From Girardia tigrina (lineage: Eukaryota), in assembly GCA_001938485.1 (NCBI GenBank), contig MQRK01255104.1:1-64000 (forward strand): 64,000 nt of DNA, written 5' to 3'. This document shows positions 7,491 through 59,465 of the stretch, in pieces. Numbering within the stretch: the stretch's first letter is position 1; every line of letters begins with the position of its first letter. A program made the position numbers and the translations under genes. The notes beneath the pieces were generated by a model. It was not told where the DNA came from. It was given only the letters and a program-made list of their open reading frames with translations, and did not search any database.

Positions 7491-10400
7491 GTGAGAATTT
7501 ATTTGAATTTTATTGATTATTTGAATTTTATTGATGATTTTAATTTTTTAATTTTAGTTTTAAATTTAAAATACAAAAAAATATTTAGAATTATTTTTAA
7601 AAATTAAATTTATTTTTGTTATTTTGTAATATTTTTATTGTAGTTTATGAAAAGTTTTAGAAAGCAATAAAAAAATACACACATTAAATCAAAAAATTTA
7701 GGCATAAAATTAAATAAAAAAATTTCATAAAATTATTAAAAAAATTAGAAAAATTTTAATAAAAAATTGCGGTTGTGTGGAGTCAGAGTGTCGACAAAAA
7801 ATAGTGTTTTGTGATTTTTTTTCGGTCGGTCAGAATATATTTAAATTTTAAGAATTATTTTGATTTGATATTTTTTGAATTTCTATTTTAAATTTAAAAT
7901 GAAAAACATTTTTTTTGGAATTATTTTTAAAATTGTGTTCCAAGAGTATAAACTTACCGATTTCTGTTCTACAAAAAAGTTTTGTGTTCTTCAGAAGACT
8001 TTTGATTCACGTCGCGAGCCGTTTATTTTGTTTTTGACTGTAAGCACTTTGCAAATGCTAAAATATTCTGAGGAATATTCGATCGATCTGAACTTATATA
8101 ATTTAATTTATAATGACTATTAAGAACACCAACAAGGGTTTTCGAACTTTTATTTTCATTACAATCAGAATTGTCTTTTGGACAACTCTCAGCAAAACTC
8201 TCGTCATTCGACATCGTTCTAAATTGATAACTTTTAGTTAATGTTTTTAAATAAACAATTTTTCGAACAAATATTTCATTATTTTCAGATTTTATTTTAA
8301 AGTTCAAATTTTGTAGTTTTAGTATTAATTTTATTTACATATTAATTTTATTTAAAAATTATTTTATGGAAAGAAAGAACATTTATTTAATTCAAAACTT
8401 AGTTAAAACTATTTATTTTATTTAAATTTTAATATGAAAATTTGAAAAGATTTAATATTTTTAAATATCTTATGTTGTACTTTAAAATGAAAATTATACT
8501 CGAATAATTATTCATCGTGAACATCTAAAATATCAATTTTCCATCTGGGTAGGAGAAACACATTTCCAAATACTAAACTCAACATACAAAATTCAACAAA
8601 CCAATTCCAACATACCAAATTTAAAATATTCCTCACAATGACCATTAAATTATTGATTCTATTTTTTTTCTCTACTTAATCAAAGTCTTAATACATCACG
8701 TGTTATAGAGATTATCCGTACCGTTATATTAGTTTGCATAAACAGTTGAATTATTAAATATTTATATGAGGGAAGTAATTATTTCTATTTCCAGTGTCTT
8801 TCTGCTTTTAAAATTTGGTTGTTTGATATGTAATTTAAGGCTTTTAATATTAGGTTATTGCAAAAGCAATGCAGGTTTTAGAACCTAAACTTTACACAAC
8901 TGTAACTCAGCACAGAATAAACTTTATTAATCGAAATAAAAACCATCAGAATCAATACATTTTTGCCAATGAGAAACAAGTTTATTGATGTCTCTAGTGT
9001 ACAACTCCTGATTTCTGGATGCGATGAAAGCATTAAAGGCGTCTTCCGTGTCATCTTGGTTTTTGAAGCATTTTTCCTGGAGGAATTTATCAAAATGCTT
9101 GAAAAAGTGGTAGTTGGTGGGCGAGAGGTCCACTGAGTAGGGTGGATGAGGCAGAGTTTCGTAGCCCAATTTGTTTAGCTTTTGTAGGGCCGGTTTTGCG
9201 ATGTGTTGCCGGGTGTTGTTTGAGGAGAATTGACCTCTTCATATTGACCAATCTTGGGCACATTTGATGCATTTTGTCAATTTGTTGGCAGTACTTCACT
9301 GTGGTGATCGTTTCACCCGTATTCAGAAAGCTGTGATGAATGAGACCGGCTGCAGACCACCAAACAGTCACCATAATCTTCTTTTGGTAGAGTTTTGGTT
9401 TCGGAAAGTGGTAAGGAGCCTGATTGTAGTCCAACCATTGTGCCGAACTTCGCCGACTGTCATAGAGAATCCACTTCTCATCACACGTAACAATCCGATC
9501 GAGAACCGATTCGTTATTGTTGCGCAGAAGACAACTCAAAACGACGATTTTTTTGACTTTTGTTCAATTCGTGAGGCACCCATTTATTGAGCTTTTTCGA
9601 CTTTCCGATTTGCTTCAAGTGCCGAGCGACGGTTGAGGGATCAACGTTAAGGTCTTCTGCGAGTGCTTGAACAGTTATGCGTGGATCGGCTTCCACCAGC
9701 TCCTTCAATTCGTCGTCAATCGTCGATGGGCGGCTACAATGAGGTTCATCGTCCAGGCTGGTATTGCCAGATCGAAACTTTTGATACCAACGCTGCACCG
9801 TGCATTCGTTGACACTTCCTTTGTCCCAAACTTCGTTGATGTTTCGAGCGGTTTGAGCTACATTACGCCCTAGCTTGAACTCGTAGAAATGTTGCGAAAA
9901 TCGCGTTTTGGCATCTGCAATTAAAATCGAAATTATTAACAAAAGAAACATTATAATAAGTTTTAGACCCATATATCTGAAATAATATAAATTAAGCTTT
10001 CGAATGATTCATAACATCATACATGCTTTTGTCGTATAACATTGCGGTAAATACAAAAAAATCAAAAACCTGCATTCTTTTTGCAACAACCTAATACATT
10101 CTTCATTGTAGTTTAATTTTAAAGCATAGTATATTTTTAACATGATTTTTAGTTGATAGTTAAGTATAAAAGTTTTTTTGCTATTGTAAAATCGATGTTC
10201 TTTTTGTCACATTTTTGTTGTAAAAACATAAAAAGAAAAATTTTCAATCTAAGTACTGACTACTAATAGTAATATATTTATCTAAAATCGACTTGTACAT
10301 TTTCAATTTTAAATGGTATAAAATCTTTTTGAAAATTTTCTTTGATTAAATTAATAAATCCGTTTTCTATCTTTGTTTAATGTTTTTGTTTTATTTTTGA

Positions 10401-13400
10401 ATGAAGAATTTCAATAATCTTTTAATACAAAAAAGTATTAAAACAAAGAATCAACATTTTTTACCTTCATTACGGTTTTATATCTTATTGTTAAGATAAT
10501 TATTTGGCTTATAAATCCTATTATAGTATTGAAACAAAGGTTGAAGGTAGAGTTAGAGTTCCCAATCCGAATATCCGGATATATTTGGACCTTTTTTTAT
10601 TATTCAACAGCCGAATATTTCAGAGTGATGTATTGTATCGATGTATATTTAGTATCTTTTTTTACTTCTTTGAAATATATATTTTGGAAGCTTGCAACTC
10701 TTTTACCTCAATATTATAAAAAAATTGCAAATTTTTCTGTGATCGGATTTCGATTTAAGTAAGTGAAATTAGTTTGAAAAAACGGTTTTTAGATTTGTGG
10801 ATAATTATTACTATATCGTATAGTGTAGTTTAAATAACTTTAAAACTTCTGCTGCTTCAACAGTTTTCTTAAATTGTTATGCTATTTTCTATTGAATATC
10901 TATGAAAATTCTTCTTCCTCTGTCTTTTTATTTTAAATACTTTACATAAGTGTATGTTCTTTCATTTTATATTCTTCAGCTTTTTCATCGACTTTATTTG
11001 AATACTTTATTTCCTTTGCTAACGTTTTGAAACAATTTTTGCGCACCATAATGAATTTATCCAATAATTGTTCTATGACATCTATGGCTTTGGAATGCTA
11101 TTATTTGATTTTTATTGGCAATTTTTACTAGTAGATCTATTTATTTTCATATTATATGATATAATTATTTAATGTTTTCAAAACATTTTTCTACAGTTTA
11201 AATATTTTAGAAGCAGCTCCATTTTCCATGAAGTATAAAAGGCCAATATTATTTAAATAATGTTTTTTGTATTTTCTAAGTAGTTCTGAAAAAAACTTTT
11301 TCATAAAACGAAATTATAATTTAGTGATTTTTTGCCTCGTGGAAGTGGAATAGTTACTCGACGACCTTGTATATTACAACTCATAAATGCTCCTACAGGT
11401 AGAACAATAAAAATGGGAAGACAATTTGAATTAGTTATATTATTTTTCAGAAAGTGCCGAGTTTTTACATATACGCGGGAAAAAATTTACAGATTTTGAT
11501 CAGGTTAGACGCGAAATTGAGGCTGAAACTGACAGACTTACGGGTAAAAATAAAGGAATATCAAACAGTCCAATTAGTTTAAAAATATATTCTCCACATG
11601 GTAATTATTAATTAGTTCATTATAACTATTATTGCTCAGTAAAATAATTTTTCACTCGAAAAAGATATCTGAAAAAAATATTTCTCAAATTGAGTTTTGC
11701 AATAAATAATCTTTTGTAATAAATCATTAAATGACGTTTTTTTAATTTATTGAATTTCTTTTATTATGTCTGCTTTAATTAATATTAAAGATGATTTTTT
11801 TAAATACCAAAAATAAATATAAAATAATAAATAGGAAAATAAATATTTGTTACAAATTCTAATATCCAAGTATTTATATACATCTAAGAATTATGTAAAC
11901 AAAAAAGCAAAACAATGGTTTCAAGAAACCCTTATCAACAAAGTTAAACTGGAGATTTACATTGAAGGGGAGAACTGGAACAGAGAATGGGGGAAGCGAA
12001 GAAGAAATAAGAAGCCGGATCGGTATTGCAACAAGCGCAATGATTAAGCTTAGCACAGTTTTTCACCTTAAAGAAATCCATCTCTGGAGCAGATTAAAGA
12101 TCACTAAGGCTATTGTGAAGGCAACACTACTCCTTGGATTCGAGAGTTGGACAATAAATCAGAAGAGCATGGATAGACTTAAAGCGTTTGAAATGAAGTG
12201 CTACAGGAGAATGCTGAAGATCACGTGGAAAGAAGACAAACGACTTTGTCTGGAGGAGAGTGACAGAAATACTGGGTAAAATACCGGAATCAATAGAAGA
12301 GATCATCAAGAGAAGGAAGCTGAAATTCTACGGATATCAAATAAGAAAACAAGCATTAGCAAAGGTTATGATCGAGGGAAGAGTGGAAGGAGAAAGACCA
12401 AGAGGAAGACCAATGAGGCAATGGATAGACGATTTAAAAGAATGGAGTGGATCGAGTAAGGGATGTCTGAGAAAAAAGGCTGTAAATAGAGAGATGTGGC
12501 GGAGGCTTGTTTACAATTGGGTGCACCCACGGCCCAACGGCTATGGCCAAAAAGAAGAAAGAAGAATTATATTCTCTGGTCACATTTCTTTTGTCACTTC
12601 ATTTAAATACTTTAATCATTTCACCATCTGTCAATTGCTTGCATTTCTTAGCTACGCGTTGGGATTCCATTACCGGTTTACCTGTAAATTTCAAAAAAAA
12701 GTAGCGGTAAAATTTACCGGTAATTACCAAAAATAATTACAAACAAACAATTTCGTCAATTAAAGATTTGATTGATTTTTGCTCGTGCTTTCATGTAATC
12801 CGAAAATTTTTACACAATGTTTGTTATTAAGATCCAAGTCGGCCACAGAAATAACTGTAAAATTGATAGCATGTCTTATTAGAAATTGCTCCAATCTTAG
12901 TAATACCTTTGTAAAATTAAAAGTTTTCAAACTCCATACTTGCTGTTGGACTTTCTTCATAAATTCTGAAAACTCTAATTTCCTCTGCATCATAATTCAG
13001 AAGTGTTATCTTTAAGCTATTGACTTTTCTGCGGCGATAAAAATGAAATTCCGCGACCCTGTTGTATATATTCCTCGATTTTTCCACGATTTCTGCAAAA
13101 GAATCTAGACAGGTGATGTGTACAGCATTTTCACAGACGGGCATGATGACATGTCGGTAGCATGCCGTAATATATCTTGCGCCATCACAGACAAATCCAG
13201 TGATACAATCAAAACTGACACCTAATGATATCAAGGTGCGTAGAATAGCTCCATCAACTGTGCTAGCATTTACTTTGTCAAGTGGTACAGTGTCAACTAG
13301 TAATGGGCGCAGCATATCTTTGCTTGAGGTCACTGTTGAACAGAGCAGTATATGCAATTCCATCTTCCCTCCATCATCCGTTGTTTCATCAGCGATGTTA

Positions 13401-16400
13401 CAGACCTTGCGCCCAGTGAACCTTTCCTTAAGCATCTCCTCGTGTTTACTATAGTTGTATGATCTTCTTACGCAAATCAGAAGATCCTGCAATACTGCCA
13501 TCATTGCCCACATGTTTTTCTAGAAATTCTTTTATTTGTGTATTATCTGCCTTCTCTACTGGTATGATTGCGGAAACCAAAGCGTGCAAAAGTCAGTGGC
13601 AACAGAATCACGGGCTTCTTTCGCTACACTTGCAACTGCAATAGAACTGATAATGCTTGTCTGCTGTGCGATCTTTGGTGCCGGTTCACCTCTGGGGGTA
13701 AATTAAGAGTCCTCTTCTCTTTCTGGGCTTTCTTTTCAAGATGCTTGGTGCTTTTTCATATGATCAACTACAGTAGACCTTCTTGAGAGATCAGCTTTCT
13801 CACATGCAACACAGAAAAGTAACTTCTGATAAGCTTCTACATAGAAATCTCCTGGAAACTTCTTTATCCGATCCATGACAACTTTTCCTCCCAAATGAGA
13901 ATTATTGTTCTTTGGAGGCATATATAACGTAAAGAAATAATTGATCACAATAATTAGCGTTACAATTTTATAATTTTATAAATTATTTAAAATTTATGAG
14001 CTATGTATTTTTCTCCGCGATTTTATGCATTATTCGTTCCGAGAAATCGCGGAAAAGTCAAGGCCTTAATAATCTTTGTGAAGAACCGAAAGTGTCTTCA
14101 CTTTTTAAAATAAAAAAACCGAGAATAATATTTCCAAAATATATTTCCGAAGTCTAACAATTTAACATTTTATTTCGTCAATTTGTTAATCGATTTAATT
14201 ATATTATAGGAGTTAAATCCTATATAAATTAAATCATTACACAAGCCCCCCTTTTGTAAGTAGAGCGTTACGTTGTTTCAAACAATTTGAAAATTATGTT
14301 CGAATCTTGATTTGATTTTGTTACGGAATTCGTTATTTAAATGTGTGAAAACAATTTCCTCAAATGGTTTTTTTGCACAAAATCTGATTCGTTTCTTATT
14401 TACAATTGTTTCGATGCCATTTTTGATCAAAAGGAAAGAATTTTTTTTATTTTTCACAATTTTGTATGGTCCGTCGAATCTGCCAGTTATGTTATCTCTG
14501 ACTAAAGCTCTAAAGTCAGAGAAAGTATTTGTAAATGTTTCATTGATTTCCTCAGTTAACAATTTGTTGATGTTCTTAATTTGACCTACGGAAGTGATGT
14601 TGTTANNGTGATTTTGTTTTTTTATAAATGGATGATATTCCTTTTGATAATCGTGTTTTATGCAACTGTCGATGTCTGTGGTGAAAACCGTCTCTTGATT
14701 TGAAATATGAAGATTTGTTTGGTTAAGAATAAGATTTTCTTTCATTTCTTCGTGTTGCGTGTAATTGTCCTTGTGGGTTCTGGATGATAGGTTTTCAGTC
14801 GAAGTGGTCTGTACTGTCTTGTTCTGAAATGTTTTGTTAAAAGTTTTAACGTCATTTTGAGAAATATGTAGAATTTCGTGTCTTGGAGTCATTGGACTCA
14901 ATAAATGTGTTGTGGTAGGTGTTACATTAGGAGGAGAAAGATTCTGGGATTTTGTAGTAGACACCCTTTCTAATGTTTGAGCAGTCGTATTAGAACTATT
15001 ATTACTAGAAGATTGCAAAGGAGATTGAGGAGCTGCTGTTAATCCAGCTAATGTAACACATGGTGTTGCAGTGGTCGAATCAGTAGACTTCGGTCTAGTT
15101 TGTAGAGATGCCACTTGTTGTGCATAATTAGGGTTAGGAATTACGGCAGCAGAAATTTGATGAACGTACTGAGGTTGCGGTAAATACATCGTTGTGGTCG
15201 ATTGAGGTAACATCATAGTTGCATATTGTGGAGACAACACTGTTAAAGCTGAATAATGTTGCACAGGAACCTGACATAAAAATGATCCATTTTGCAAAGC
15301 ATATGGAACTTGTCCAATTTATGAAACTGTTCCAGAAATTTCTTGTCGAGGATATAAATGTTTCTTTCTTACAGCTTGTTTAATGTTTAATTTTCTCTCT
15401 TTAAAGATCAATGTTTCAGATTCATTCTTGGTGAGATTTTCAGCAATTTCTTCATTTTCAAAAGTCACAAATCCATAGCTTCTTTTCGATAATCCCGTAC
15501 GATCATTTATTATATTTGCGTATTTAATTGAACCATAATTCGAAAAGAAAATTTTTAATTCGTCCTCAGTTGTATTTGATGTGAGTCCACCCACAAAAAT
15601 TCTGTTTGGTATAAGTGTACCAATTTTCGGTATTGATACGTGAGAAAAAGAATTGAGCTGATTTATTTGATTGATCTTGTTATGCTTCACTTTCTTTATA
15701 GTTTTAGAAATTCCCAATGCCAATAAAGAGTATTCAACATTTTTTAGTACATCGAAAAGCAGTCTTTCCATAGCGTTTAATAGAAAATTGTATTTTATGT
15801 GCAACTGCGACAAATTATCTTGTTGATCTTGATATGTGGATAATACTTCCTGGATTAACTGATTGAAATTTCTTTTTGAAGAACTTTTCTTTTTTAATGG
15901 AGGCATCTTCTTTTTTCTTTTTTTTCTTCTGACACCAATTGTGAAGAACCGAAAGTGTCTTCACTTTTTAAAATAAAAAAATCCGAGAATAATATTTCCA
16001 AAATATATTTCCGAAGTCTAACAATTTAACATTTTATTTCGTCAATTTGTTAATCGATTTAATTATATTATAGGAATTAAATCCTATATAAATTAAATCA
16101 TTACAATCTTATATCATGTAATTAAAACGTCGTTACACAAAATTTATTCTCAAAATTTTAAAATTCAGTGCACTCAATTTAAGAAGTATTGAGAGTGAAG
16201 CGTATTAATTCAAAGATCTTTGAATCATAAAATTAACGTCAAGATTACACTCTACAAATTCTTTAAAATTATTTATCGATTTTAATAATAATAATTGTGA
16301 GGAATATGGGGTGTGTAATTGTTTCTTGTAGTGTTTGCATGTTTAAATGTTGTGTGTTGATTTGGGATTGTGCCTCTCCTAATCAGATGGATGATCAATA

Positions 16401-22400: not shown

Positions 22401-25400
22401 CAGAACTTTCAGTGTTTTTAAATCGCTTGTTGTATGTTTGCTATGTAATAGTCACAATCCTTAATAATCATTTAATAATAATCGTGTATTCAATTTGTTC
22501 TCAGTACAATATCTTTTACTAAAGCTGTTCAAATTTCATTCAATTATAAACATGTGGTTTTCCTATTGTATAAACACTGAACTCAAATCTATTTCTCTAT
22601 ACTTTTAAAATAAGCTTTTTCATTGTGGTTTTGATAAATATTACAGTCATCACAATCTGTTTTTTAACGTAACATATAAAAATAAATAATCAATTTTATA
22701 TAAGATTTAATGACTTTTTCAATCACAGTATTGAATCTCACCCTTATCGATTTGCCTGGTATAACAAAAGTTCCCGTTGGTGATCAACCAGCAGATATTG
22801 AAGATCAAATTCGTCGAATGATTTTGGAGTTTATAACGAGTGATAACTGCCTCATTCTTGCAGTTTCTCCAGCAAATTCTGATTTGGCGAATTCTGATGC
22901 CTTAAAGTTAGCCAAAGAAGTGGATCCTCAGGGATTACGTACAATAGGAGTAATAACCAAATTAGATTTGATGGATAAAGGCACAGATGCTCGTGATATT
23001 TTAGAAAATAAATTTTTACCACTTCGTCGAGGTAAGAATATTTTACAGATATAGCGGTATTTTTTATAATTATATTATCTATTATCCTGGTTTTAATGAA
23101 AAAATGCATAACTTAGTAATTTGTATATCACTGCAGGGAAGTTTTAAAATTACTTATTTTAAAATTTCAGACAATTTCAGATGAACAAAAATAACCAAAT
23201 AGAAAATAAAAACATACAATAAACTTAGACTTAAGCTCTTAGAAAGGAAAGCTTAGGTTTTCGCCAGACTTTAAACTTTTTTTAGGAAAAAAATAAAATT
23301 GACGGCCAAAATTAATATTTAATCCGCCACTGCGTAAACATTTTTCTTCTGAAATTTTCACTTTTGCGCTAAAGCACTGCGAATCGAAAAACTAATTATC
23401 TTCTTTTCTTGTGGTAATTTTTTACTGTTTATATCATCGAATTAGTCACTAATTCAGAATTATTCTCATTTTTATAAAAATAATTTAGTCACATTGTCGC
23501 CATTTTGAATGCATTAATTGATTCTGTTTCTCCTTGATTTAATTTAAAGCTTATTAAAGCACGCCTAGTAAATATTTCCAGCCACTCACTTACTATTATG
23601 AAATCTATTTATTGCGACTTCTTGGTCATGACCTGAAATATGGATGTTTCGGCTTCTAATATGCTTACGCCATCTTAGTATAATCGTTAGATAAGAGTGA
23701 AGTTTCTCAATCAAGCGTTTTGAAAGAATATTCTCTTCCATTACAATTAATCGATTGAAGAAAACATGGAAATTGACAAAAAATTAATGGAAGAAGAGCC
23801 ATATTTCCAATAAATTTTTGTTCCGTAATTAATCAAATGTATTGGGTTGTTGCATAAGTTCCCGCCGTTACATGAAACTATTTGTTCTACTAAGACTTTT
23901 TGATGTTTGGCGAAGTGTTACCATTAGAAAGCCCGTGCTCTACAAGATTAAAGCAATCGTTTTTGCCTATATTATTTTTTTGTCTTTTTTTAGAACCGTC
24001 AAATGGATTGTCAACTCGACGAAAAATCGCATTTTCGACACCTCCTTTTCGCCTTTAATCGAGGTCAAAAAGCGAGTGAAGCTACCAGAGATATTTGTGT
24101 CGTGTATGGAGAGGACGCTATAGCTGAGAGAACTGCTCGGAATTGGTTTGCCAGGTTCAAACAAGATAATTTAGCCCTCAACGACGCTCCTCGTTCCGGA
24201 AGACCAGTCGAGATGGACGAGGACGAACTCGGGGATCTTTTGAAGGAAGATGGCCGCCAGACATGCAGAGAATTGGTCGAAAAGCTGAATTGTGATTTTG
24301 CGACAATTTCACGCCATCTTCAGTCGATGGGTTTCACTCAAAAGCTTGGAGCTTGTGTCCCGCACGAACTCACCCAAAAACAGAATCCTTCAACATCCTC
24401 CCTATTCCCCAGACCTCGCCCCGACAGATTACCATCTCTTCCTATACCTTTCAAATGAAATGAGGGGTCTTAGCTTCGAAAATCAGGATCATCTTGAGAA
24501 TTGGCTCCACAACTTCTTCGAAACTCGACCTAAGGATTTCTGGCGAAATGGAATCAACAAACTGGTGGAAAGATGGGAAGAAGTAGTGAACAATGAAGGA
24601 GAGTACATAATTGATTGAAGTGTTATTATTTTTGCTGTTAAAATTTTTTGATTTCATTAAATATATAATTGACTGAATCATTATTTTGGTTGTTAAAATT
24701 CTTTGATTTCTTTGAAAATAAATGTTAAAAAAACGGCGGGAACTTATGAAACAACTCAATACATTTTTAATAAATCACCATCGTTTTATTTTTTACCCCA
24801 GTAACGTTGTCCAATCAGATTGTTCTAACTTCTAATAATACTTAAACAAAATTGTTTTTCTTAATTTATTTTCTATATAAAATTGATTAATATTTAGTTA
24901 ATCAATTTTGTATTCGATTAATTGATTTTCACTTCCGAATGAGCGATGCATAACGAGCATTGAATGTAAAAATTTGATTCTACTAAAAACGTTGTGGACC
25001 TGTGCATGCTGTAGAGGGAAATTAGATCGGTAAATGTGGGCACTATAACAGTTTTAATTAAATTAACTGAAATCAGAATTCGAATTCCGGTTCTTTATGA
25101 AACATCAAAATCTTTTCTACATTGCTAGTATTATTGCTGCTTCAATAATCGCTCCTTTGTCATTTCAAGTAAGTTTTGTCTTTTTTCAGCTTTCTTTTAC
25201 ACACATGTATAAATATTTTTATTAAAAAATAATTTCATTTTAATAAAAGCTTATTTGAATTTTATTATTTTAAATATGTATATTAAAACATTTATTGTGA
25301 ATAGGCTATATTGGTATTGTTAATCGAAATCAACGAGATATTGAAGGGAAAAAAGATATAAGAAAAGCATTAGAAGATGAAAAACGGTTTTTTATGTCAC

Positions 25401-26071
25401 ATCCAAGCTATAGTCATATAGCTAACAAAATGGGTACACAATACCTCCAAAAAGCTCTTAATCAACAACTTATTAATCATATTCGCGAAACTTTACCCGT
25501 AATTCGAAATAAAATGCAAGCTCAATTATTAACCATTGAAAAAGATGTTGAAGAATTTCGAAATATGAAACCTAGTGATCCGAGCTATAAAACAAAAGCT
25601 TTAATTTTACAAGCCATGAGATTTTGCAAAGATTTCGATAAAGAAATCATTGGAAGTGGCTTTGAAACAGATATAAATCAGTTGACTGGCGGAACGAAAA
25701 TTAATCGACTATTTCATGAAATGTTTCCTTACGAATTAGCAAAAGTATGTTTCTCATATACTTATGTCTGAATTTACGTTTATAATGAGAGAAATAGAAA
25801 TTATTTTTGTTGCTTACGGTCAATTTGACTATGAATAATATATTTAAATTATGCATTATTATTTATGTTTAAATTTCAAGTCAAATTGACATAGCTTGTT
25901 TGTCTTATAGAATTTCAGTTTGAATAATTTGAATAAATTTTGTTTCAAAGCTTTAAAAATAGACGCTATTAATTTTAAAAACTGAATATCACATATGCTT
26001 TGCAGATAATCTTTTACGGTATTTATACTAAATATAGACAGTATTTGTATCTGAACATAAATAATTACACT

Positions 26072-26118
<47 letters not shown>

Positions 26119-29100
26119 TTATAAAGGTTAACAATAAATTATAATATTTTAAAATTGTAGAAGTATTTACCATTAATATGTCTAAGTAAAGTAACGTTTG
26201 GAATCTCTTATCAATTACTAAATCGAAATTAGTTTAAAAATAATGTTTATAAAAATTCAGACAAAAAAGATTTATTATCAACAAGATAATTATTTCTACG
26301 GGCCACCCATCATTATTGGATATAACAAATAATGAATAAAATCTACTTATAAAAATGAAAGTAACAAATAAATAATTTCTATGTAATCTTTTTTTCATAT
26401 TATTATTTTAATATTTTTAATAATTGTTTTGAGTGTCGCATAAACATTAATTTTAGGATAGTTATATCCAATTAATAACGCTTGCTACGTTACTCTCATG
26501 GTAAATTCCAAAGTTGAACACAACTTTATAATTCTTGATTTCAAAGTTGCTTTAACCTTTTCGGCCCTAAATATAAATATTCTATAATTTTGTGGTACAC
26601 ATGTACCGCTAGGACCGAATTAAATAAAATACTTTTAATTTATATAAATTACTGATTTTTTAAAGAAAAAAATACTGATGAAATAATTTAAAATACTGAT
26701 CAATTAAATACAAGCCTAAATTAATTGGCTCACCATTCGTCTTAATATGATGTTTTGCTAAACTGGTACATCCAGTATCCCATTTGTCAGCCATAAATAC
26801 TTCTGCCTGTTTCTGAATGGGCTCTAACAGTTTTGAATCTACTTTACCTATGTAATCTAATGCTCTTGTTAATCTCTCTCCTGGCCTTATCACCCTGCCG
26901 AATTTTGCCTCGATGTTGCACACACCTCTTCGTGCTTTTCTTGATACATTATTGTCTTGAGACTCGTTCCTCTGTATGGAATAACCGAAAATTTTCATGA
27001 ATACTATTCCTCTGATCTTTTCTGGAACCACACTCTCCACAACAATAAATGGTACTACTTTTCTTGTCTGAAATTAGATATAATTTTTCTGCTTGGTCGG
27101 TTAAATTACAATTTTCTTGTAACTTCTGAACTAATAAACTTTCTTCAACCGATGCAACAATTTAAACCTTCTTCAAATGATACAATAATTTGAGCCTTCA
27201 AATGTCAACAATAATTATTCTTCAACTAGTGTAATCTTCTTCAAACAATTAACAAAATGTCAACAATAATTCTTCTTTAAATCAATAGGTTAGTCTTCAA
27301 CCAAGAATTCGAACGATTGACTTGTCTTCAACTAGTATAATCTTCTTCAAACAATTAACACGTATCAATCTTGATCAAATTCTTCCCGACTGACGAGCCT
27401 GAATTGTTTTAAAAGCTTCTTCGAGTAAAAAAAATTAATACCTGAATTTATCAAATAACAAATACACACCAGCTGGACATTGGTCACCTCTCAATTTTGC
27501 TTTTTTGCAGCGGTAATAAACATGATTTACATCTAGCGTATGATTTATATAATGATAACTTCATGTATCTTTATCATAAATAAACTCCGTTGCAACTTCT
27601 TTATTTGGGTAGATATGTTCCATTTTCCAGTTACGTTTTCTTTTTGCTCTTCGTTTTGCTTGAATTGCACCATTTTCAACACTTTCCATATCGATTTCCT
27701 CATCTGAGACGTGTTCTGGAATGCTTGATGTTGCCATTGAATATTGAAATAAATTGGTAATGTTTTTTTTAATTGAATTTGATTGTATACACTGACCATT
27801 GTCCGTCAATTTTAATTTGTTTTTGTTGCTAAAAACGTATTGCAGTGGCATTTTAATATATCTTTCTAAAAATAACTAATTAAAAAATTTACTAAATTAT
27901 GAAAGAAGAACTTACAAGTTATTGAAAATTCAGAAAAAATAAAATTTCAAAATTTTATAAGTAAAAATGTTGTAAAGTAATATATTTAAAGATCAAGAAA
28001 TTTACTACAAAAAATATTATCAGATTCGGCGTCGAAATTTACTACAAAAATATTATCACAAATTCGGCATCGAAATTTACTGCAAAAAATATTATCGTAA
28101 ATTCGGCGACGAAATAGTACGAGTGAATCAATTTTATTATCAATCAAATGACTTATATTACTAATCAAACCAATAAAATACATATTGACATTTTATTACA
28201 GATCGGTTATTTAATATACTGATTTTAAAGGCCTTACACCAAAAAAATTAAAAATAAAACTAAAAAATATAAGAGTAATTATATTTTTAATTTTAAGAAT
28301 GGTCAAATGTTTGTTTGCTTATTTGATTTATGCTTTTTTTTGACGTTGTTTTTTTATTTTTTTTACCCTTTTGATTTGGGTGTGTCGTTTGTTTTTTTTT
28401 GATTTTTATTTTTTTTATTGCTGGTTTTTTTTGAAACACAGCCTAATGGGTGTAATGAAATGATAATAATCGGATGAAATGATAATTCCATAGAAATATG
28501 GAATATTTGAATTTAAAATTAAAAATTCAATTAAAAATAAATCGATTGAATAATTTGCAGTTTGCAGTAATTTTTTATTCTTCGGGATAAATAATTACTG
28601 GCAATAATTCAATCGATTTATTTTTAATTGAATTAATTAATTTTAAATTCAAATATTCCATATTTCTATGGAATTATAATTTCATCCGATTATTATCATT
28701 TCATTACACCCATTAGGCTGTGTTTCAAAAAAAACCAGCAATAAAAAAAATAAAAATCAAAAAAAAACAAACGACACACCCAAATCAAAAGGGTAAAAAA
28801 ATAAAAAAAACGTCAAAAAAAACGAAAATTCAAAACAACCATCTTAACATTACATGATCACCAAAATTTGTTAAATAAAAGTTCAAAAATTAAGACAGAA
28901 ATCTCAGGTAATCCGCAAACAATCAAAGAAGTGTCAGAGGAAGTAATAGGAGAACAGAGCTCAGTTACAGTCAACATCATTGCGGATTCAAAGGACACAA
29001 ATCATCACAGAGGTGAAGTGCAAGATAATATCTATTTGGAAAAGATTGATAATCAAACACTTAAAAAGTTGATAGACGATTTCATTACAATTGAAGATTC

Positions 29101-32100
29101 AGAAGGAATGAAGTTGACGGGTGTGAAAACGGAACATCAAATTTGTACAACCGGTCGGCCAACTCATGCAAAAATTCGACAATTACCACCAGAAAAATTA
29201 CAAGCGGCAAAAGAAATCTTCAATGAATTACTTAAAAAAATATAATGTCAGCGTCGAACTCAGATTAGGCGTCGCCTTTAATGATGGTTAAAAAAAGCAA
29301 TGGAGATTGGAGATGTTGCGGGGATTATCGACATCTAAATGCAATGACTACCAAGGATGCTTACCCAGTTCCGTTATTGAGGGCTTTGACAACAAGATTA
29401 AATAAGGCAGAAATTTTCTCTAAAATCGATCTAGAGAAAGCGTACTATCAGATCCCAATGAAGCAGGAACATATAAAGAAAATGGCGATATTAACTCCAT
29501 TCGGATTGTTCCAATTTAATAGAATGCCGTTCGGGCTAAAAAATGCCTCAGCCACTTTTCAAAGAGTGATGGATAACATTTTTCGAGGCTGCCAAAACAT
29601 TGTTGTATACATTGACGACATTTTAGTCGGTAGTCACGGTCTTAAAGAACACTTGAAAGACATCGAATTAGTTTGAAAAACCAGTTAGAAAAACCAAATA
29701 ATGTTAAAGGAATTCGAAGACTCATCGGGATGATAAACTTTTACCATCAGTGTATTCCAAAATGTTCGGAAATTTTGGCACCTTTGTGCGATTTGATAAA
29801 GAACAAACAAAAAAANNNNNNNNNNNNNNNNNNNNNNNNNNNNNNNNNNNNNNNNNNNNNNNNNNNNNNNNNNNNNNNNNNNNNNNNNNNNNNNNNNNNN
29901 NNNNNNNNNNNNNNNNNNNNNNNNNNNNNNNNNNNNNNNNNNNNNNNNNNNNNNNNNNNNNNNNTGGAACAAACTATAGAAGATAAACAATTACCAGTTG
30001 GCTTCCATTCTAGAAAATTGAAAGTACAGGAGAGCCGTTATTCAACATTTGATAGGGAGCTCTTAGCTATCTTCGATGGAATCAGACATTTCAGAGATTT
30101 AATTGAAAATCGTGAATTTGAAATTTATACTGACCATAAATCATTAATCCATGCACTGGAAATGAAAAACCCGAGTCCAAGACAGCAAAAACAAATAAAT
30201 TTTATATCTCAATTCTCTTGCACAATAAAATACATCAATGGAAGATCGAACCTAGTCGCAGATTTTTTTTCAAGAACGGAGGTTAATCAGATTAATTTCG
30301 CACCAATAATTTCAGTTGAAGAATTAAGAGGTAAACAAGAAAACGTATTAAGCGAATCTCTAAAAACAAAGTCATTAGAAATTATTGAGTTCAACGGGAT
30401 CTGGTACGATATCAGCATAAAAAATAAAGTTAGGCCTTTATTACCGAAAGAATTTCGGGAAAACTGTTTCANNNNNNNNNNNNNNNNNNNNNNNNNNNNN
30501 NNNNNNNNNNNNNNNNNNNNNNNNNNNNNNNNNNNNTGCTGGCCGGGTATGCGGCAAGATATCAAGTCGTGGGTTAAAGAATGCATCGAGTGTAATTTGA
30601 ATAGAATAACCCAACATCCAAAATTAGAGGCTATCAATTACCAAGAGTGCGACAATTTAGAAACGGTATACATCGATATAGTTGGACCGTTACCGGTGAA
30701 TAATAAAAGAAGATTCTTAATTACAATGATAGACAGAGCATCCAATTGGTTTGAAGTAACTCCTACTAAAGAGATTACGGCAGAGAAANNNNNNNNNNNN
30801 NNNNNNNNNNNNNNNNNNNNNNNNNNNNNNNNNNNNNNCAACGGGATCTGGTACGATATCAGCATAAAAAATAAAGTTAGGCCTTTATTACCGAAAGAAT
30901 TTCGGGAAAACTGTTTCAGGGAAGTACACAACAAGGGCCATTATGGTGCAAAGAGTAATTATGAAATGATGTATTTAGATGTGTGCTGGCCGGGTATGCG
31001 GCAAGATATCAAGTCGTGGGTTAAAGAATGCATCGAGTGTAATTTGAATAGAATAACCCAACATCCAAAATTAGAGGCTATCAATTACCAANNNNNNNNN
31101 NNNNNNNNNNNNNNNNNNNNNNNNNNNNNNNNNNNNNNNNNNNNNNNNNNNNNNNNNNNNNNNNNNNNNNNNNNNNNNNNNNNNNNNNNNNNNNNNNNNN
31201 NNNNNNNNNNNNNNNNNNNNNNNNNNNNNNNNNNNNNNNNNNNNNNNNNNNNNNNNNNNNNNNNNNNNNNNNNNNNNNNNNNNNNNNNNNNNNNNNNNNN
31301 NNNNNNNNNNNNNNNNNNNNNNNNNNGAACCTTTGTAGAGAGTACTCAATAATCAAAGTCAGAACGACAGCATATAACCCACAAAGCAATGGAAAGGTTG
31401 AACGTTTCCATAAGGAGCTCAAAGAAACTCTGAACACTCTGTGTAATAATAAAGACTGGCTATCCAAACTCGGTAAATCGTTATTGGCACTCAGAACCAA
31501 AATATCAGTTAAAACAAAAGATTCACCATTATTTCGCTTGACAGGAAGGAGATTGAATCCTCTAACAGATCAAGAAGTTATAAACAAGTATTTCACAAAC
31601 AAAAGCTGTCCAAAGAATTTGAGTGCATTTATCAAGAAANCCTTTTCAAAAAATTTTGAAAACAAATATGATGGACCTTATCCGGTCAAAATAATCACGA
31701 ACAATACGGCTTTACTCGAGATTGATAAAGGGCATAAATATGTTAATTTAAGAAGGTTAAAATTTAGTAGTAAAATCTTACCGTAGTGCTCCGCATTTAA
31801 CAGGGGGGCTTATGTAAAGGCCTTACACCAAAAAAATTAAAAAGAAAACTAAAAAATATAAAAGAGTAATTATATTTTTAATTTTAAGAATGGTCAAATG
31901 TTTGTTTGCTTATTTGATTTATGCTTTTTTTTGACGTTGTTTTTTTTTATTTTTTTTTGGTGTAAGGCCTTTACACTGATCAATAGGGAATTGATCAATA
32001 TATACTGATCAATGAAATAAAATACTTTAAATTTATTTAAATTACTCATTTTTTAAAGAAAAAAATACTGATCAAATAATTTAAAATACTGATCAATTAA

Positions 32101-35100
32101 ATACAAGCCACCAGAAAATATATATTCAACACGTTGATTGTCGTATATACAGGCTGTTCTGTTTAAATTGAGACTACATTTACTTTTTTATTTATTTTAC
32201 TATATTTTTCATACTTCGCAAACAGCTAATACATATGTTAAACACATGATAAACAGTTCTCTCCACTCGATCCAATATCCTTCAGATGTAATTACAGCCA
32301 CAACTAGTACGGAAGTGATGGTAGACTCGGACCAGTTGATCTCGACGCATTTGAGCAAGTGTCGATGATGGCGGCTCGGAGCGAATTGACAGTGTTGTGT
32401 GTACGTTTATTGGACTATCGCTTGATAATGCACTAGCAGGGATAGTTGAACTGATTTAAATCATGGGGGCGGCCAGCGTCTCGTACTTTATGGATGACAT
32501 CAGTAGGATGCACTTCGCCAGTAGTTACCCTTTAATCGTATATGTTACCAGCTGATAGATCTTAAGGACGTATGAGTGGTCGCGCAGATCGTCATGAATA
32601 TCGCTGTGGATCGTTTAGTTTTCAATATGCAGTTGAGTTGCAAGATCACGCATCAACGCTAACGGCTCATCGTCGACCATCTGCTACAACTGCTCCAGAA
32701 AGGTCGGACTATGTGTCCGACACTGATCGGTAGTTTGTTTTCTTACTGGACCTCATGGAGCCCTCTTCTTTTCCATTAGCCCCCTAATACTACTCAACGA
32801 TCCACTTAGACGGTCACTTTTTGCAGTTTGGTGAAGATGATTATTTCAGTTGGTATGTAGCCGGCGCGAAGGCAAACCAAAACGTTGGCGTGACGATCTT
32901 GCTGAGTTGACATTTCTGAAATTTTTTAATTGAAAGTGATTCTAGGGTATCAGACAAAGTCAATCTAAAATGTTACTCCGCTTACTCAAAAAATCTGGTT
33001 TTCACACAAATTCAAAATCAATCTCAATTTAAACGGAAAACCCTATACATTGGTAATTGTAAGTTTTGTGGGTCGAAACATGTTGTGATGATATTCAGTG
33101 GATTTTACTATTTAATAATGATGTTTAAGACGTCAATACTACCATTAATAAGATAATATAGCTAAAGCAAATTATAAATAGTTTAAGTTATCTTTAAATT
33201 ACAAAAAAGCTCAGCTAAATCAGTTAGAAAATTACATGATCTGCATATAGAACAGATATAATTAATTATTGGAATTTTAATAAAATAATGATTAAAATAA
33301 AGATAATTGAAGAAAATCAAAACATGTCCGTATCTTGGAACTATTTTCTAAAATTATCTTTCGTAAAACATGTATTTATTCAATTTTATGTTTACAAAAT
33401 TAAAAAATGAATGCCATACACTTCTGACATGTGATATTCCCCCGTATCATAATTCTTCAACTAAAGGTTGAAGATCAAACCCAAATCATTATAATAACTA
33501 TAATATGCTATAATCTTTATTTGCAATATATTTTAAAGGAAGAATTTTTCTCATAATTTGTGATGAATTTCATATTGTTAATGATTACTATTAATTAAAT
33601 TTTGTCAATTAATAGAAAGATTTCGATGAAAAAAAATTGAGAAAAGAAATAGCAACAGCCATTAAAAATATACATGGTGTACGGTAAGTCAATATTTGTG
33701 AGGTCTTGTTGACATAGTTTTGCTGTTATTAATTAGTACCGGGTTGTTTACACCGGATTTGGCTTTCGAAGCAATTGTCAAATTGCAAATAAAAGACTTA
33801 GAAGAGCCTTCAGTTAAATGCATCGATTCTGTTGTTTCTGAATTAATGGAAATAATTCGCAGAAATTCTCAAAAGGCAATTTTTTGCAAGATTTATCTGT
33901 GTTATATATTTTATTGGATAGATTTCAAGCTTTCCACGATTACAAGACGCTATTGAAAGGCAAGTTTTACGGGAAGTCCGAAACAAACAATGTCGTACAA
34001 AAGATCAGTTAAAAATGCTTATTAAAATTCAATTGTCATACATTAATACAAACCATGAAGATTTTATTGGGTTTAACAAGTAAGTGAAATGATAACAATA
34101 ATATTTGCTGTTGATTTAAATCATTATTTGTTCATTGTTTGATATTTTTGCACTTTAATAACATATAAAATCATATTCATAAAAGACAAGTAATCGACCA
34201 TTATATCATATAAAGTTTGTGTTGAGTGAATTTCGTCTGTTAAAACCAGGTGTAATGACACGTTTAGAACGACTTTATATTGCCCAATTATATTTTGGCT
34301 CAAATAAATTTACTTTTAAATATAATATCTACAAAATCAATAAAAGTCAAGAAATTTTAAATTAGCAACAAAATTATTAATCCTTTTTAAAAGAAAAAAA
34401 GTAAAGCGAAATCACAGCATAAGTCCCAACTGAAATTTCACAGCTAATAATCCACATTCTCTACGAGTTATAAAACTGTGTATACTGAAAAAATAACAGT
34501 CACTTTTGTTTTTATAAATTGCAAATTTAACTATTTTTAATCTTTTTGTGGTGGTATCAATGTGGCAAGAACAACAAATCGCAAATATTGCAAATGAAGT
34601 CAACTTGGAAAATTTAATGTACCATAATTTTCTGATTTAGTTAGTCTAAGTAGCCATTTACAATTCCCGTGCTCATCTCAAATACACGGTCTTGAATAAG
34701 TTAAATTAGTTTAAAATGTTTTTTTATTCATATTTACTTCCGCTTATCTTCTATACTCATATATCGTTGGGTACAAGAAGGATTTTCAAATATAGAATAT
34801 TTTCACCAAGGCTACAAAACGTCTTTGGTGAAGAATCAATAATCAAATGAGAATGAGACTGTTAAAATTAATAAATAATAAATCCAAAAGTTTAAAAGAT
34901 TATTAAAAGTTTAAAGTGAAAATAAATAATTATATAGAATAATTTTCTTCTTCAATCTATTCAATATCTATGCTCAAAATGTTTTGATGATCAAAAGGCA
35001 AAAGAGGAGTGCCTTAAAGATCCTACTGCACTAAGAAATTTAACTTGTTTAAATACTGCAAAATAGTACATATCGTCAGTTTTGTCAAACTGGAAAAGTA

Positions 35101-57689: not shown

Positions 57690-59465
57690 ATGTCCCAATC
57701 GATTCTCTACAATAAATCTGTGAATTCCGATTTACCAGTTCTCGAAATCAAGGTATTCAAACGAAAACTCAGGATTTATATTGGAATATCAATTGTTTTG
57801 TTTTTGATTCTGGTTGTTATTTGCATTGTTTTGGTGTTGCTGTGGTTGGGTTTAATTAACAAAAAACCAGTCGTTATTTTGAATCGATTTGTGAAAGTAA
57901 AATGTGGATTAATTGAAGGAAATATAAATAAAGGAATAGTTGAGTTTCTGGGGATTCCATACGCGTATCCTCCGGTTGACAGCAGACGGTTTGTCCACGC
58001 GCAGGAGATTCTGACTGAAAAGGGCTGTAGAGAGGTTTATGGAGATTTATCAGGTGTTTATCTGGCGAAAAAATATAAACCATCCTGTATTCAATATAAT
58101 AAGTTGAATAATAATTTGATTGGGAATGAAGATTGTCTCTATCTGAATATTTATTCCCCATCAAGTTCCAAGGATCAAAAGTTGCCCGTTATTTTTGTGA
58201 TTAGTGGTGTGTTTTTTGCGTATGGGAGCGCTGATACGCCCGGATTAAATATCATTCCTGAAGTCGTTTTGGCAACAGAAGCGATACATGTGACGTCGAA
58301 TTATAGACTTGGTCCAATGAATTCGATCATCAATCCCGAAACAAAAGAAACCAATCACGGTTTGTCGGATCAATTGTTGGCACTCACGTGGATCCGGAAA
58401 AACATTGCTTTTTTTGGTGGAGATCCATCGAATGTCATCATTTATGGAATCGGATCGGGATCGACGATTGCATTGGCTTTATTGAATTCAAATAGAGCAG
58501 TTAATTTGTTTTCAAAAATTTGGGTTTCCAATCCCATTATCAAAATAGAAGATACATTAGAGGAGGTTTTTAAAAATCAAGAGAAGTATATAAGTGATGT
58601 AAAAAAATTAGACGATTTTCAAAAATCAATAAAAATCGAAGATATTTATCGGAATTGGACATGGAATAATGTTGAAAGAGTGTTGGAAGATCGTTGGTTC
58701 ACTTTTCCAAGTAGAGAAGAAAGGAAAGAAATTAATCGTTTGCATTTTCTGTTGGTTGATAAAGATTTCATAACGGATTCATATTTATTGAAAAAAACGT
58801 CATTGAATCGAAATATTCCTTTAGTGATTGGAAATAATGCCAACGAAGTGGATATCTTTCCATCGCCAAAAAGCGTTAGGTTTTGGGAGTTGAGTTATTT
58901 TAGAGATTTTGTAACTATGAAAATGAAAAAATTTTCCACGTTTTCTAATAAAACTTTTTTTGAGGTTTTCGATAGTATTTATGCGAAAGATAAAAGTGTG
59001 CCTGCTGAAGACGGTTACACGAGAATGGTGACGGATATAAGAATAACTTGTCCCATAAATTCATTGTTGAAGAAAGTTATGGGATATTCAACTAATCAGC
59101 CTATTTATCGATACATTCTTGAAGACAATCATGAATATTTTGATTATTTTGATTTGAAATATTCGAATAAATTGGCAGCATATGCTTGGGACAGTATTCT
59201 TTATCTTCATGGATACAAAACTCATTCTGATTACGGAAAATATGACGAAAAAGAAATAAATATGAGTAAAATTCTTAATAAAGCTATGAGAGATTTTGCT
59301 TGGAACGATGAATTGAACGACATGGCCATTAGTAAAGATGGAAATGTGATTGTAAATTTAATTAAAAATGGAAAATTTTTTCGAGAATGTTATTTTAAAG
59401 CAAACGAATGTAAAATGTGGGAAACTCACATGAATGGTACTGAACAATTTTTGTGGTCTGTTTGA
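57690..59465 (+). CDS. Type-B carboxylesterase-fold protein, type II membrane anchor, probably non-catalytic (neurotactin-like)
   Basis: 591-aa uninterrupted ORF; hydrophobic segment at aa ~29-57; FLGIPYAYPP, EDCLYLNIYSP, NYRLG, DQLLALTWIRKNIAFFGGDPSNV; nucleophile elbow reads GIGSG instead of GxSxG. Confidence 0.88.
   Translation: MSQSILYNKSVNSDLPVLEIKVFKRKLRIYIGISIVLFLILVVICIVLVLLWLGLINKKPVVILNRFVKVKCGLIEGNINKGIVEFLGIPYAYPPVDSRRFVHAQEILTEKGCREVYGDLSGVYLAKKYKPSCIQYNKLNNNLIGNEDCLYLNIYSPSSSKDQKLPVIFVISGVFFAYGSADTPGLNIIPEVVLATEAIHVTSNYRLGPMNSIINPETKETNHGLSDQLLALTWIRKNIAFFGGDPSNVIIYGIGSGSTIALALLNSNRAVNLFSKIWVSNPIIKIEDTLEEVFKNQEKYISDVKKLDDFQKSIKIEDIYRNWTWNNVERVLEDRWFTFPSREERKEINRLHFLLVDKDFITDSYLLKKTSLNRNIPLVIGNNANEVDIFPSPKSVRFWELSYFRDFVTMKMKKFSTFSNKTFFEVFDSIYAKDKSVPAEDGYTRMVTDIRITCPINSLLKKVMGYSTNQPIYRYILEDNHEYFDYFDLKYSNKLAAYAWDSILYLHGYKTHSDYGKYDEKEINMSKILNKAMRDFAWNDELNDMAISKDGNVIVNLIKNGKFFRECYFKANECKMWETHMNGTEQFLWSV

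Follow-up and report, generated by a model that had tools for sequence, protein, structure and literature searches.

The stretch of DNA analyzed here comprises the first 64,000 nucleotides (nt) of contig MQRK01255104.1 and is referred to throughout as the window. Our subject is a small, complete long terminal repeat (LTR) retrotransposon of 2,029 bp that lies on the minus strand of the window between positions 14077 and 16105 and whose interior, as we argue here, very probably derives in part from a captured boule mRNA. The two LTRs form a direct pair with TG..CA ends, differ by 1 substitution and one 1-nt indel, and are identical at 99.4% of their aligned bases. A perfect 5-bp duplication, ATCTT, stands on either side of the pair, and a primer binding site by the 5' LTR and a polypurine tract by the 3' LTR complete the features by which LTR retrotransposons are recognized (Table 1). 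Because the LTRs are 99.4% identical and the target-site duplication is intact, the copy in the window is a very recent insertion. An earlier note on this DNA (hereafter the original prediction) had described LTRs of 165 and 166 nt separated by about one substitution and one indel, a perfect target-site duplication, a primer site, a polypurine tract and a recent integration as a unit, and all of this is borne out by direct reading and pairwise comparison.

The primer binding site, TGGTGTCAGAAG, is a 12-mer that lies two bases from the 5' LTR and is found once in the window. Its assignment to tRNA-Leu in the original prediction is supported by the literature: a probe published as complementary to mouse tRNA-Leu(CAA) opens with these 12 bases (PMC7997516), and the same 12-mer has been reported as the primer site of Steamer, a Gypsy element (PMC8905726). 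Besides this identical site, Steamer and the C-clade Gypsy elements have in common with our element short LTRs that begin with TGTAA (PMC8905726); the Steamer reference LTR measures 177 bp as compared to 165/166 nt here, and no reverse transcriptase is left in our element by which its clade could be placed. No tRNA genes were found by ARAGORN in the window or in 44 fetched loci, and no Rfam family was matched in the window. A G+C content of about 28%, together with the best named protein match described below, suggests that the window comes from a planarian genome.

The 1.7-kb interior is fully occupied by a single long open reading frame (ORF) whose 543 codons include 2 stops, one within the frame and one at its end, whereas the other two minus-strand frames contain 35 and 42; the probability that an open run of this length would arise by chance at this base composition is below 1e-11. 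The claim that one frame spans the interior therefore holds in the sense that the frame is far from chance, with the qualification that it is broken once by an in-frame stop and also contains one masked spot of 2 Ns, and the two pieces of the interrupted frame were searched separately. Its first ATG, at 15906, lies just past the primer site, by 20 nt, and its end falls 22 nt short of the polypurine tract. The original prediction had placed the start of the frame 34 nt inside the LTR; the ATG is in fact 34 nt downstream of the LTR edge, and the stop-free stretch extends 21 nt back into the LTR, where it contains no start codon. A Pfam scan of the interior returned a single domain, the RNA recognition motif (RRM) RRM_1 (E 1.8e-16), and no protease, reverse transcriptase, RNase H or integrase core, in agreement with the original prediction that the last three are missing between the primer site and the polypurine tract. 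Since these are the functions that an autonomous LTR retrotransposon encodes, the element is non-autonomous. It is not a terminal-repeat retrotransposon in miniature (TRIM): the size of its LTRs would fit that class, but its interior, a frame of 543 codons, is not without coding capacity.

Table 1. Features of the boule-carrying LTR element and the evidence on which each assignment is based
Feature	Position in window	Strand	Basis
Target-site duplication, left copy (ATCTT)	14072..14076	.	read directly; same as 16106-16110
3' LTR, 165 nt, TG..CA ends	14077..14241	-	pairwise comparison with 5' LTR
Polypurine tract, AAAAGGGGGG	14246..14255	-	4 nt before 3' LTR; same tract at LTR start in L004
Single long reading frame (gag-position N-terminus, Boule segment, low-complexity middle, integrase-like tail); broken gene	14278..15906	-	stop counts in three frames
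C-terminal tail with GPY motif, common to P0121 and P0122	14281..14604	-	search of representative proteins
Five-strand SH3-like core of tail, integrase C-terminal domain fold	14374..14514	-	AlphaFold2 and Foldseek
P/Q/Y-rich, then S/T/N-rich middle; contains 3' fusion point	14605..15180	-	first part collinear with L001 and L004
Boule-derived segment, minimum extent	15181..15639	-	5' limit, divergence of L085; 3' limit, end of similarity to tapeworm Boule (E 0.002)
Boule/DAZ-family RRM, intronless	15352..15621	-	Pfam RRM_1 1.8e-16; DAZL match in PDB; named matches
First 89 codons of the parent's first (gag-position) ORF	15640..15906	-	L085/P0124, ~95% identity
Primer binding site, complementary to 3' end of tRNA-Leu(CAA)	15926..15937	-	literature match; single occurrence in window
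5' LTR, 166 nt	15940..16105	-	pairwise comparison with 3' LTR
Target-site duplication, right copy (ATCTT)	16106..16110	.	read directly

The RRM belongs to the Boule/DAZ family. Among solved structures, proteins with two RRMs rank highest overall, yet they reach only 26-39 bits per domain, and the best single-domain match in the PDB is DAZL, which has a single RRM, as our element does, and scores 62.5 bits over the whole domain. In a search of 5.8 billion proteins, every named match among the 120 listed is Boule, Boule-like or DAZ. The RRM thus groups only with the family to which the original prediction had assigned it, and no named match among those listed points to any other. The best named match among the matches listed is Boule1 of the planarian Schmidtea mediterranea (UniProt A0A172RVQ0, here P0002), at 81% identity in the best local match. 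The conserved blocks PNRIFVGG and YGFVTFE are both present in the RRM of the element, and the RRM fold is modelled with per-residue confidence (pLDDT) values of 83-90. The Boule-derived segment begins a few codons before the RRM and runs through a conserved stretch that follows it, where 39 residues match the corresponding stretch of a tapeworm Boule with an E value of 0.002 in a single comparison that used no motif profile. Flatworm Boule proteins such as Boule1 of S. mediterranea have in common with the element a DAZ-family RRM and, it would seem, a recognizable post-RRM stretch. They differ from it in that the N-terminus of the host proteins is absent from the element, that the segment in the element is intronless and lies between LTRs, and that 8 of the 55 RRM positions that are invariant in five host flatworm Boules have been replaced in the window copy. 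As for the function of the family in these animals, the summary given in PMC6225667 has boule1 of Schmidtea regulating meiosis and boule2 maintaining early male germ cells.

Two further observations concern the sequences used for these comparisons. The deposited Boule1 (P0002, 154 aa) and the protein called from L001, a JGI contig described below, have a post-RRM frame that differs from that of the trematode and tapeworm proteins (P0003 and P0004) and of the window copy. To judge by sequence, about 20 nt would be missing from the deposited Boule1 at an exon junction, as in a short splice isoform. A Logan transcript contig (L003, 670-2367) contains a flatworm-like boule ORF (P0005) followed by an ORF of 565 aa for which no Pfam match is recorded.

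The RRM had been described as intronless in the original prediction, and an indirect comparison, with the genes of relatives, is in keeping with this. In the boule locus of the tapeworm Hymenolepis diminuta (L002) the coding sequence breaks inside the RRM at the position that matches residue 111/112 of the element, and metagenome contigs supplied ten more invertebrate boule loci with the same break. A second break, near residues 141-143, is seen in most of the non-flatworm loci, and several have one at 162/163. The element is collinear through all of these positions, with no intron at any of them, and such collinearity is what a processed mRNA would be expected to give.

Upstream of the Boule segment, the source of the N-terminal part was found by a region-restricted search with its first 92 residues. 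That search identified a JGI contig (L085, encoding P0124) that is about 95% identical to the window at the nucleotide level over a stretch that begins close to the start of the frame and ends at window position 15640. Past this base L085 continues into an unrelated ORF that encodes a C-X2-H-X9-C-X3-C motif and then a long region rich in N, T, K and Q, and it is exactly where L085 enters this Cys/His ORF that the sequence of the window copy and of L001 turns into boule. This maps the 5' fusion point to a single base, and the fusion is in frame. Because L085 carries the same 89 codons into a different, non-boule ORF, they belong to the element itself, and the stretch that the original prediction gave as about 85 residues of unexplained origin proves to be 89 codons long and to come from the first ORF of the parent element. 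P0124 has no match in Pfam or the PDB, and for the N-terminus nothing credible emerged from searches of Pfam, PDB sequences or PDB profiles. The N-terminus is modelled as one long helix (residues 14-63), and we apply the label gag to it provisionally, by virtue of its position and of the Cys/His motif that follows it in the parent.

Downstream of the Boule segment the frame passes through a low-complexity middle and ends in a tail with a GPY motif. The middle, whose length differs among family members, is probably the C-terminal region of Boule; it has no significant match to host Boules, P0124 or Pfam, its similarity to P0124 and P0121 does not exceed what composition would give, and a word-index search with the downstream piece of the frame returned no match. 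On these comparisons the 3' fusion point of the window copy falls somewhere within the middle. For the tail, a search of 1.84 billion representative proteins gave two credible matches only, the short proteins P0121 (E 2e-13) and P0122 (E 7e-7), and searches of Pfam, PDB sequences and PDB profiles gave nothing credible. A bacterial PKD-repeat protein of 2,240 aa (P0123) was rejected as a relative of the tail, its match being compositional. An AlphaFold2 model built on a four-sequence alignment folds tail residues 31-77 with a pLDDT of about 90, and all of the Foldseek matches listed for it in the PDB are retroviral integrase chains or complexes. The best of these has a probability of 1.00, an E value of 5e-4 and a root-mean-square deviation of 1.5 Å over 46 columns, and the matches align over 45-71 columns, an extent that fits the SH3-like C-terminal domain of integrase. 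The tail is also 29% identical (E 2e-5, single comparison) to the end of pol in a Gypsy-type element elsewhere in the window (31484-31786), with the same pattern around the GPY motif in both. An integrase origin of the tail is thus well supported by the modelled fold and by context. GPY-type motifs are not exclusive to Gypsy, and of the original prediction of a Gypsy integrase GPY/F C-terminus, the motif and the integrase fold stand and the Gypsy part is likely but unproven. Taken as a whole, the sequence evidence makes a Ty3/Gypsy type the most likely assignment for the element.

The locus that encodes P0121 (L005) has features of its own. Its tail is 43% identical to that of the window, with similarity kept almost to the stop codon, and is preceded by a region rich in N, T and K; the plus strand of L005 consists almost solely of A and C, and the 70 nt that follow the tail show neither a purine tract nor an LTR.

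The boule-carrying element is a member of a family. L001 (JGI, 1,087 nt) aligns with the window at 94% identity over the final 60 nt of the LTR, the primer site, the 89 codons and the boule part, and its 5' fusion point is the same. L004 (ENA, 1,001 nt), at about 75% identity, has its parts in the order of the window: the post-RRM boule part, a shorter low-complexity middle, the GPY tail and the purine tract, after which a recognizably related LTR begins. Because these two contigs come from independent assemblies, the junctions are not artefacts, and neither of the doubts raised with the original prediction, that the LTR-boule junction might be a misassembly or the element a single-copy oddity, is sustained: the junction recurs in L001, and L001 and L004 are diverged relatives. 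A fusion point common to several copies is the mark of secondary retroposition, and the 5' fusion common to the window and L001 indicates that the chimera has been copied since it formed. The host-derived interior is likewise enclosed between pieces of one LTR element, on the 5' side by the codons that L085 identifies and on the 3' side by the tail, purine tract and LTR. No second copy of the element was found within the window, a 24-mer from the LTR had 0 matches in JGI metagenome contigs and IMG/VR, and a scan of metagenome contigs with a profile of the Boule alignment yielded no further copy of the element, all the loci it recovered being host boule loci from other animals. The window copy has one interruption of the frame, and L001 and L004 have at least one each.

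The history of the family appears to be mosaic. When the window is set against L004, the boule-side part has diverged by about 0.38 at silent sites and the tail by about 1.5, or some 4 times as much, and the starts of the LTRs are about 80% identical. Judging from this contrast, one lineage probably acquired its tail by exchange with a different lineage of elements, and because of the greater divergence of the L004 tail, the 3' fusion in L004 need not be the same as that in the window. The first 85 nt or so of L004 (1-85) are G+C-rich, unrelated to the element and joined abruptly to the boule part, and are probably the product of a chimeric metagenome assembly. The sample accessions of four contigs used in these comparisons were found in no paper.

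The anatomy of the element, the origin of its three coding parts (that of the tail by its fold), the 5' fusion, the diverged copies and the recent insertion are all matters of observation, and we consider it very probable that they are to be explained by the capture of a processed boule mRNA in a defective Ty3/Gypsy-like LTR element that was then amplified in trans. The element keeps in cis its LTRs, the tRNA-Leu primer site and the purine tract, together with the first 89 codons of its first ORF and about the last 108 codons of an integrase, and on this account all that lay between has been replaced by a piece of processed, intronless boule mRNA. The replacement would have come about when reverse transcriptase switched templates between co-packaged element RNA and boule mRNA, as is known of LTR elements (PMC5131818). 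Because the element encodes no reverse transcriptase, RNase H or integrase core, it would have been copied in trans by the proteins of an autonomous relative, and copying would have been repeated, with the 5' fusion kept in a copy that is 6% diverged and the order of parts kept in one that is about 25% diverged. The mosaic tail may have arisen from template switching or recombination among co-packaged RNAs. The boule cargo would be mainly a passenger, although the uninterrupted part of the frame, comprising the gag N-terminus and the RRM, could yield a short helix-plus-RRM protein, and the weak signals of constraint described below would reflect selection in the lineages that founded new copies, not a proven host function. 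The core of the original prediction, a transduced boule mRNA moved in trans, thus finds support in the grouping of the RRM, the absence of introns, the recurrent 5' fusion, the order of parts in L004 and the fold of the tail.

Several points weigh against this account. Neither a full-length relative nor an autonomous partner with matching LTRs or a matching primer site was found; it is the tail and the primer site only that place the element in its superfamily; and both the loss of introns and the exact 3' fusion point are judged through the loci of relatives and not through the host gene. The remaining points concern selection. The ratio of nonsynonymous to synonymous rates (dN/dS) for the RRM, which the original prediction had named as a gauge of selection across copies, is 0.13 when the window is compared with L001 (synonymous changes, 6; replacement changes, 3; binomial p 0.004 relative to the ratio of sites), and this value, which comes from nine changes only, would be more readily explained by selection on the coding frame than by a cargo that is purely a passenger. 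Over the 159 codons that can be compared with L004, at a base difference of 30%, 1 stop is seen where 6.5 would be expected if the same substitutions were placed at random, and only 1% of simulations match this.

Other parts of the frame give a different picture. For the N-terminus the dN/dS ratio (omega) is 0.57, and past the RRM omega is 0.76-0.93, which is nearly neutral. In the tail, by contrast, the proportion of nonsynonymous differences is 0.36 as compared to 0.65 for synonymous ones, a sign of constraint that may, however, predate the capture and stem from autonomous elements. Of the RRM positions that are invariant in the host Boules, 9 are replaced in L001, and 7 are replaced in both L001 and the window. 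The original prediction took the in-frame junctions as a hint of selection for a protein, and both junctions are indeed in frame, but the interruption of the frame in 3 of 3 copies, the near-neutral omega after the RRM and the seven replaced positions blunt that hint. Overall, these small counts point to some modest pressure in the founder lineages to keep the frame open and the RRM folded, for which a cause at the level of RNA may stand alongside one at the level of protein, and nothing here shows a benefit to host or element.

The first alternative to a passenger cargo, and one that we regard as somewhat unlikely, is that the chimeric protein itself has been selected, either as the helix-plus-RRM product or as the full fusion with the integrase-like tail. 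In one version the protein would carry an RNA-binding module in place of the Cys/His motif of the parent and aid the element's own RNA, and in another it would act as a mimic of Boule in germ cells. The low dN/dS of the RRM, a frame more open against L004 than the neutral expectation, the two in-frame fusion points and the confidently modelled RRM fold would all be explained, as would the fact that the RRM follows the same 89 codons that precede the Cys/His motif in P0124, and the stop in the window copy could, to judge from the divergence of the LTRs, postdate the insertion. These considerations have to be set against the fact that only nine changes in the RRM are available, that none of the three sampled copies has an intact frame, that seven positions invariant in five host Boules are replaced in both close copies, and that the N-terminal and post-RRM parts evolve near neutrality. 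The other reading of the open frame is that it was kept for RNA-level reasons only, the protein being without function. RNA with a premature stop is subject to degradation by nonsense-mediated decay, and an element might gain from avoiding this. Such an explanation would account for an omega of about 0.93 after the RRM, a value that leaves the residues at liberty to vary, in a region with far fewer stops than expected, but it leaves the low dN/dS of the RRM unexplained and sits poorly with the stop in the youngest of the copies seen, that of the window, and we think it unlikely.

Weaker still is the proposal, which we would call improbable, that small RNAs matching boule come from the element and regulate the host gene. 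At least about 0.45 kb of boule-derived sequence is indeed embedded in a transposon, and transposons are the kind of locus at which piRNA pathways are aimed; Masculinizer retrocopies in a moth, the subject of PMC9674220, would be a precedent; the RRM, however, is only about 77-81% identical at the protein level to Boule1 of S. mediterranea, so that long perfect matches to the host would be unlikely if that gene were the target. That we are dealing with a one-off, be it a processed pseudogene that landed in an old LTR element or an artefact of assembly that joined LTR and boule, is hardly credible: a single copy in the 64-kb window and an A-rich run near the start of the tail might be taken to favor it, but the 5' LTR, primer site, N-terminus and boule junction recur in the independent L001, the order of boule part, tail, purine tract and LTR recurs in L004, and the LTRs and target duplication enclose the whole unit. 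We give equally little credence to the view that the whole interior is one host mRNA, from a planarian boule paralogue with this N-terminus and tail; the termini of Boule proteins are poorly conserved, so that missing similarity there is weak evidence, and the P0121 tail occurs in a context without a visible purine tract or LTR, but the 89 N-terminal codons run into a different ORF in L085, the frame fits between the primer site and the purine tract with only 20 and 22 nt to spare, respectively, and the tail has the integrase C-terminal fold and a GPY motif.

Elsewhere in the window several other mobile elements and gene fragments can be recognized. A degraded and heavily N-masked Gypsy-type element occupies positions 28241-32109 on the plus strand and includes matches to RVT_1, RT_RNaseH and Integrase_H2C2, the GPY-type C-terminal ORF mentioned above, an internal duplication (30392-30644 and 30839-31091, 447 nt apart) whose copies are 100% identical, and two non-collinear pairs of flanking repeats. 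As a candidate for the autonomous partner of the boule-carrying element it was rejected, since it shares neither LTR nor primer site with it. The Gypsy-type element sits in an intron of about 8 kb between two dynamin-like exons on the plus strand (25394-25771 and 33720-33956; Pfam Dynamin_M, profile positions 47-161 and 183-227). Fragments of Mariner/Mos1-type transposases (HTH_48 and Transposase_1) are found at 9090-9972 on the minus strand, where the sequence is split into two ORFs, and at 24003-24458 on the plus strand. Adjoining the insertion site of the boule-carrying element, a block with a G+C content of 0.38 contains three minus-strand ORFs (12917-13948) without a Pfam match, which we take to resemble a remnant of a hAT- or zinc-finger-type transposase. 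An uninterrupted ORF of 591 codons from the carboxylesterase family (COesterase, E 2e-61), apparently intronless, lies at 57690-59465 on the plus strand. Neither for this ORF nor for the RRM-bearing piece of the boule-carrying frame is an identical protein on record.

The capture of genes by LTR elements has been documented in plants, yeast, flies, mosquito and vertebrates. For animals, Tan et al. (2016; PMC5131818) described LTR-mediated retrocopies that are often in frame and co-transcribed with the element, and that, like the boule segment, are intronless copies situated between discontinuous pieces of one LTR retrotransposon. The event is therefore less exceptional in kind than the original prediction had assumed. 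Secondary retroposition has been noted for maize Bs1 and for two fly cases, CG17604_r and CG10212_r (PMC5131818), and the Drosophila cases are similar to ours in their in-frame fusion to the coding sequence of the element and in a fusion point that is found in more than one copy. Our case differs from those of the survey in a flatworm-like host, which lies outside the coverage of PMC5131818, and in a cargo that encodes a germline translational regulator; as compared to the young, polymorphic fly cases, the family described here, with identities from 94% down to about 75%, appears to have persisted longer. Bs1 and our element are both low-copy, defective LTR elements with captured host exons, a hybrid ORF and common switch points indicative of secondary retroposition. 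Bs1 contains pieces of three plant genes, partly out of frame, as compared to one gene, in frame at both ends, in our element, and expression of the Bs1 hybrid protein is documented whereas our element is known from sequence alone.

Acutely transforming retroviruses are replication-defective and helper-dependent, with a host cDNA that replaces most of gag-pol and is fused in frame to gag. The analogy to them that the original prediction drew is apt as a likeness of mechanism and does not extend to membership, in that the element is endogenous and gives no sign of an envelope, of cell-to-cell infection or of an effect on host cells. In the literature that we searched, no report was found of gene capture by an LTR element in flatworms, or of the capture of boule or another core regulator of the germline. 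Events of this kind are known, and boule as the cargo of an element in a planarian-like genome is a new animal example of them.

The value of this example is that both ends of the capture can be read, that the first ORF of the parent is known from a sister contig, and that the chimera has persisted and diversified, which together make it a clean case in which to ask whether captured host domains are passengers or are put to use by the element. It also carries a warning for the annotation of planarian genomes, in which gene models described as boule-like on the strength of an RRM may be the cargo of a transposon. One such gene model (P0001) is labelled merely as an RRM protein in a public set. 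There is, finally, a slim chance that the founder lineages of the family keep a working protein, composed of the gag-derived helix and the Boule RRM, with or without the integrase-like tail, that would bind the RNA of the element or compete for the targets of Boule; if that were so, the captured RRM of a master germline regulator would tie the spread of the element to the very cells that pass it on.

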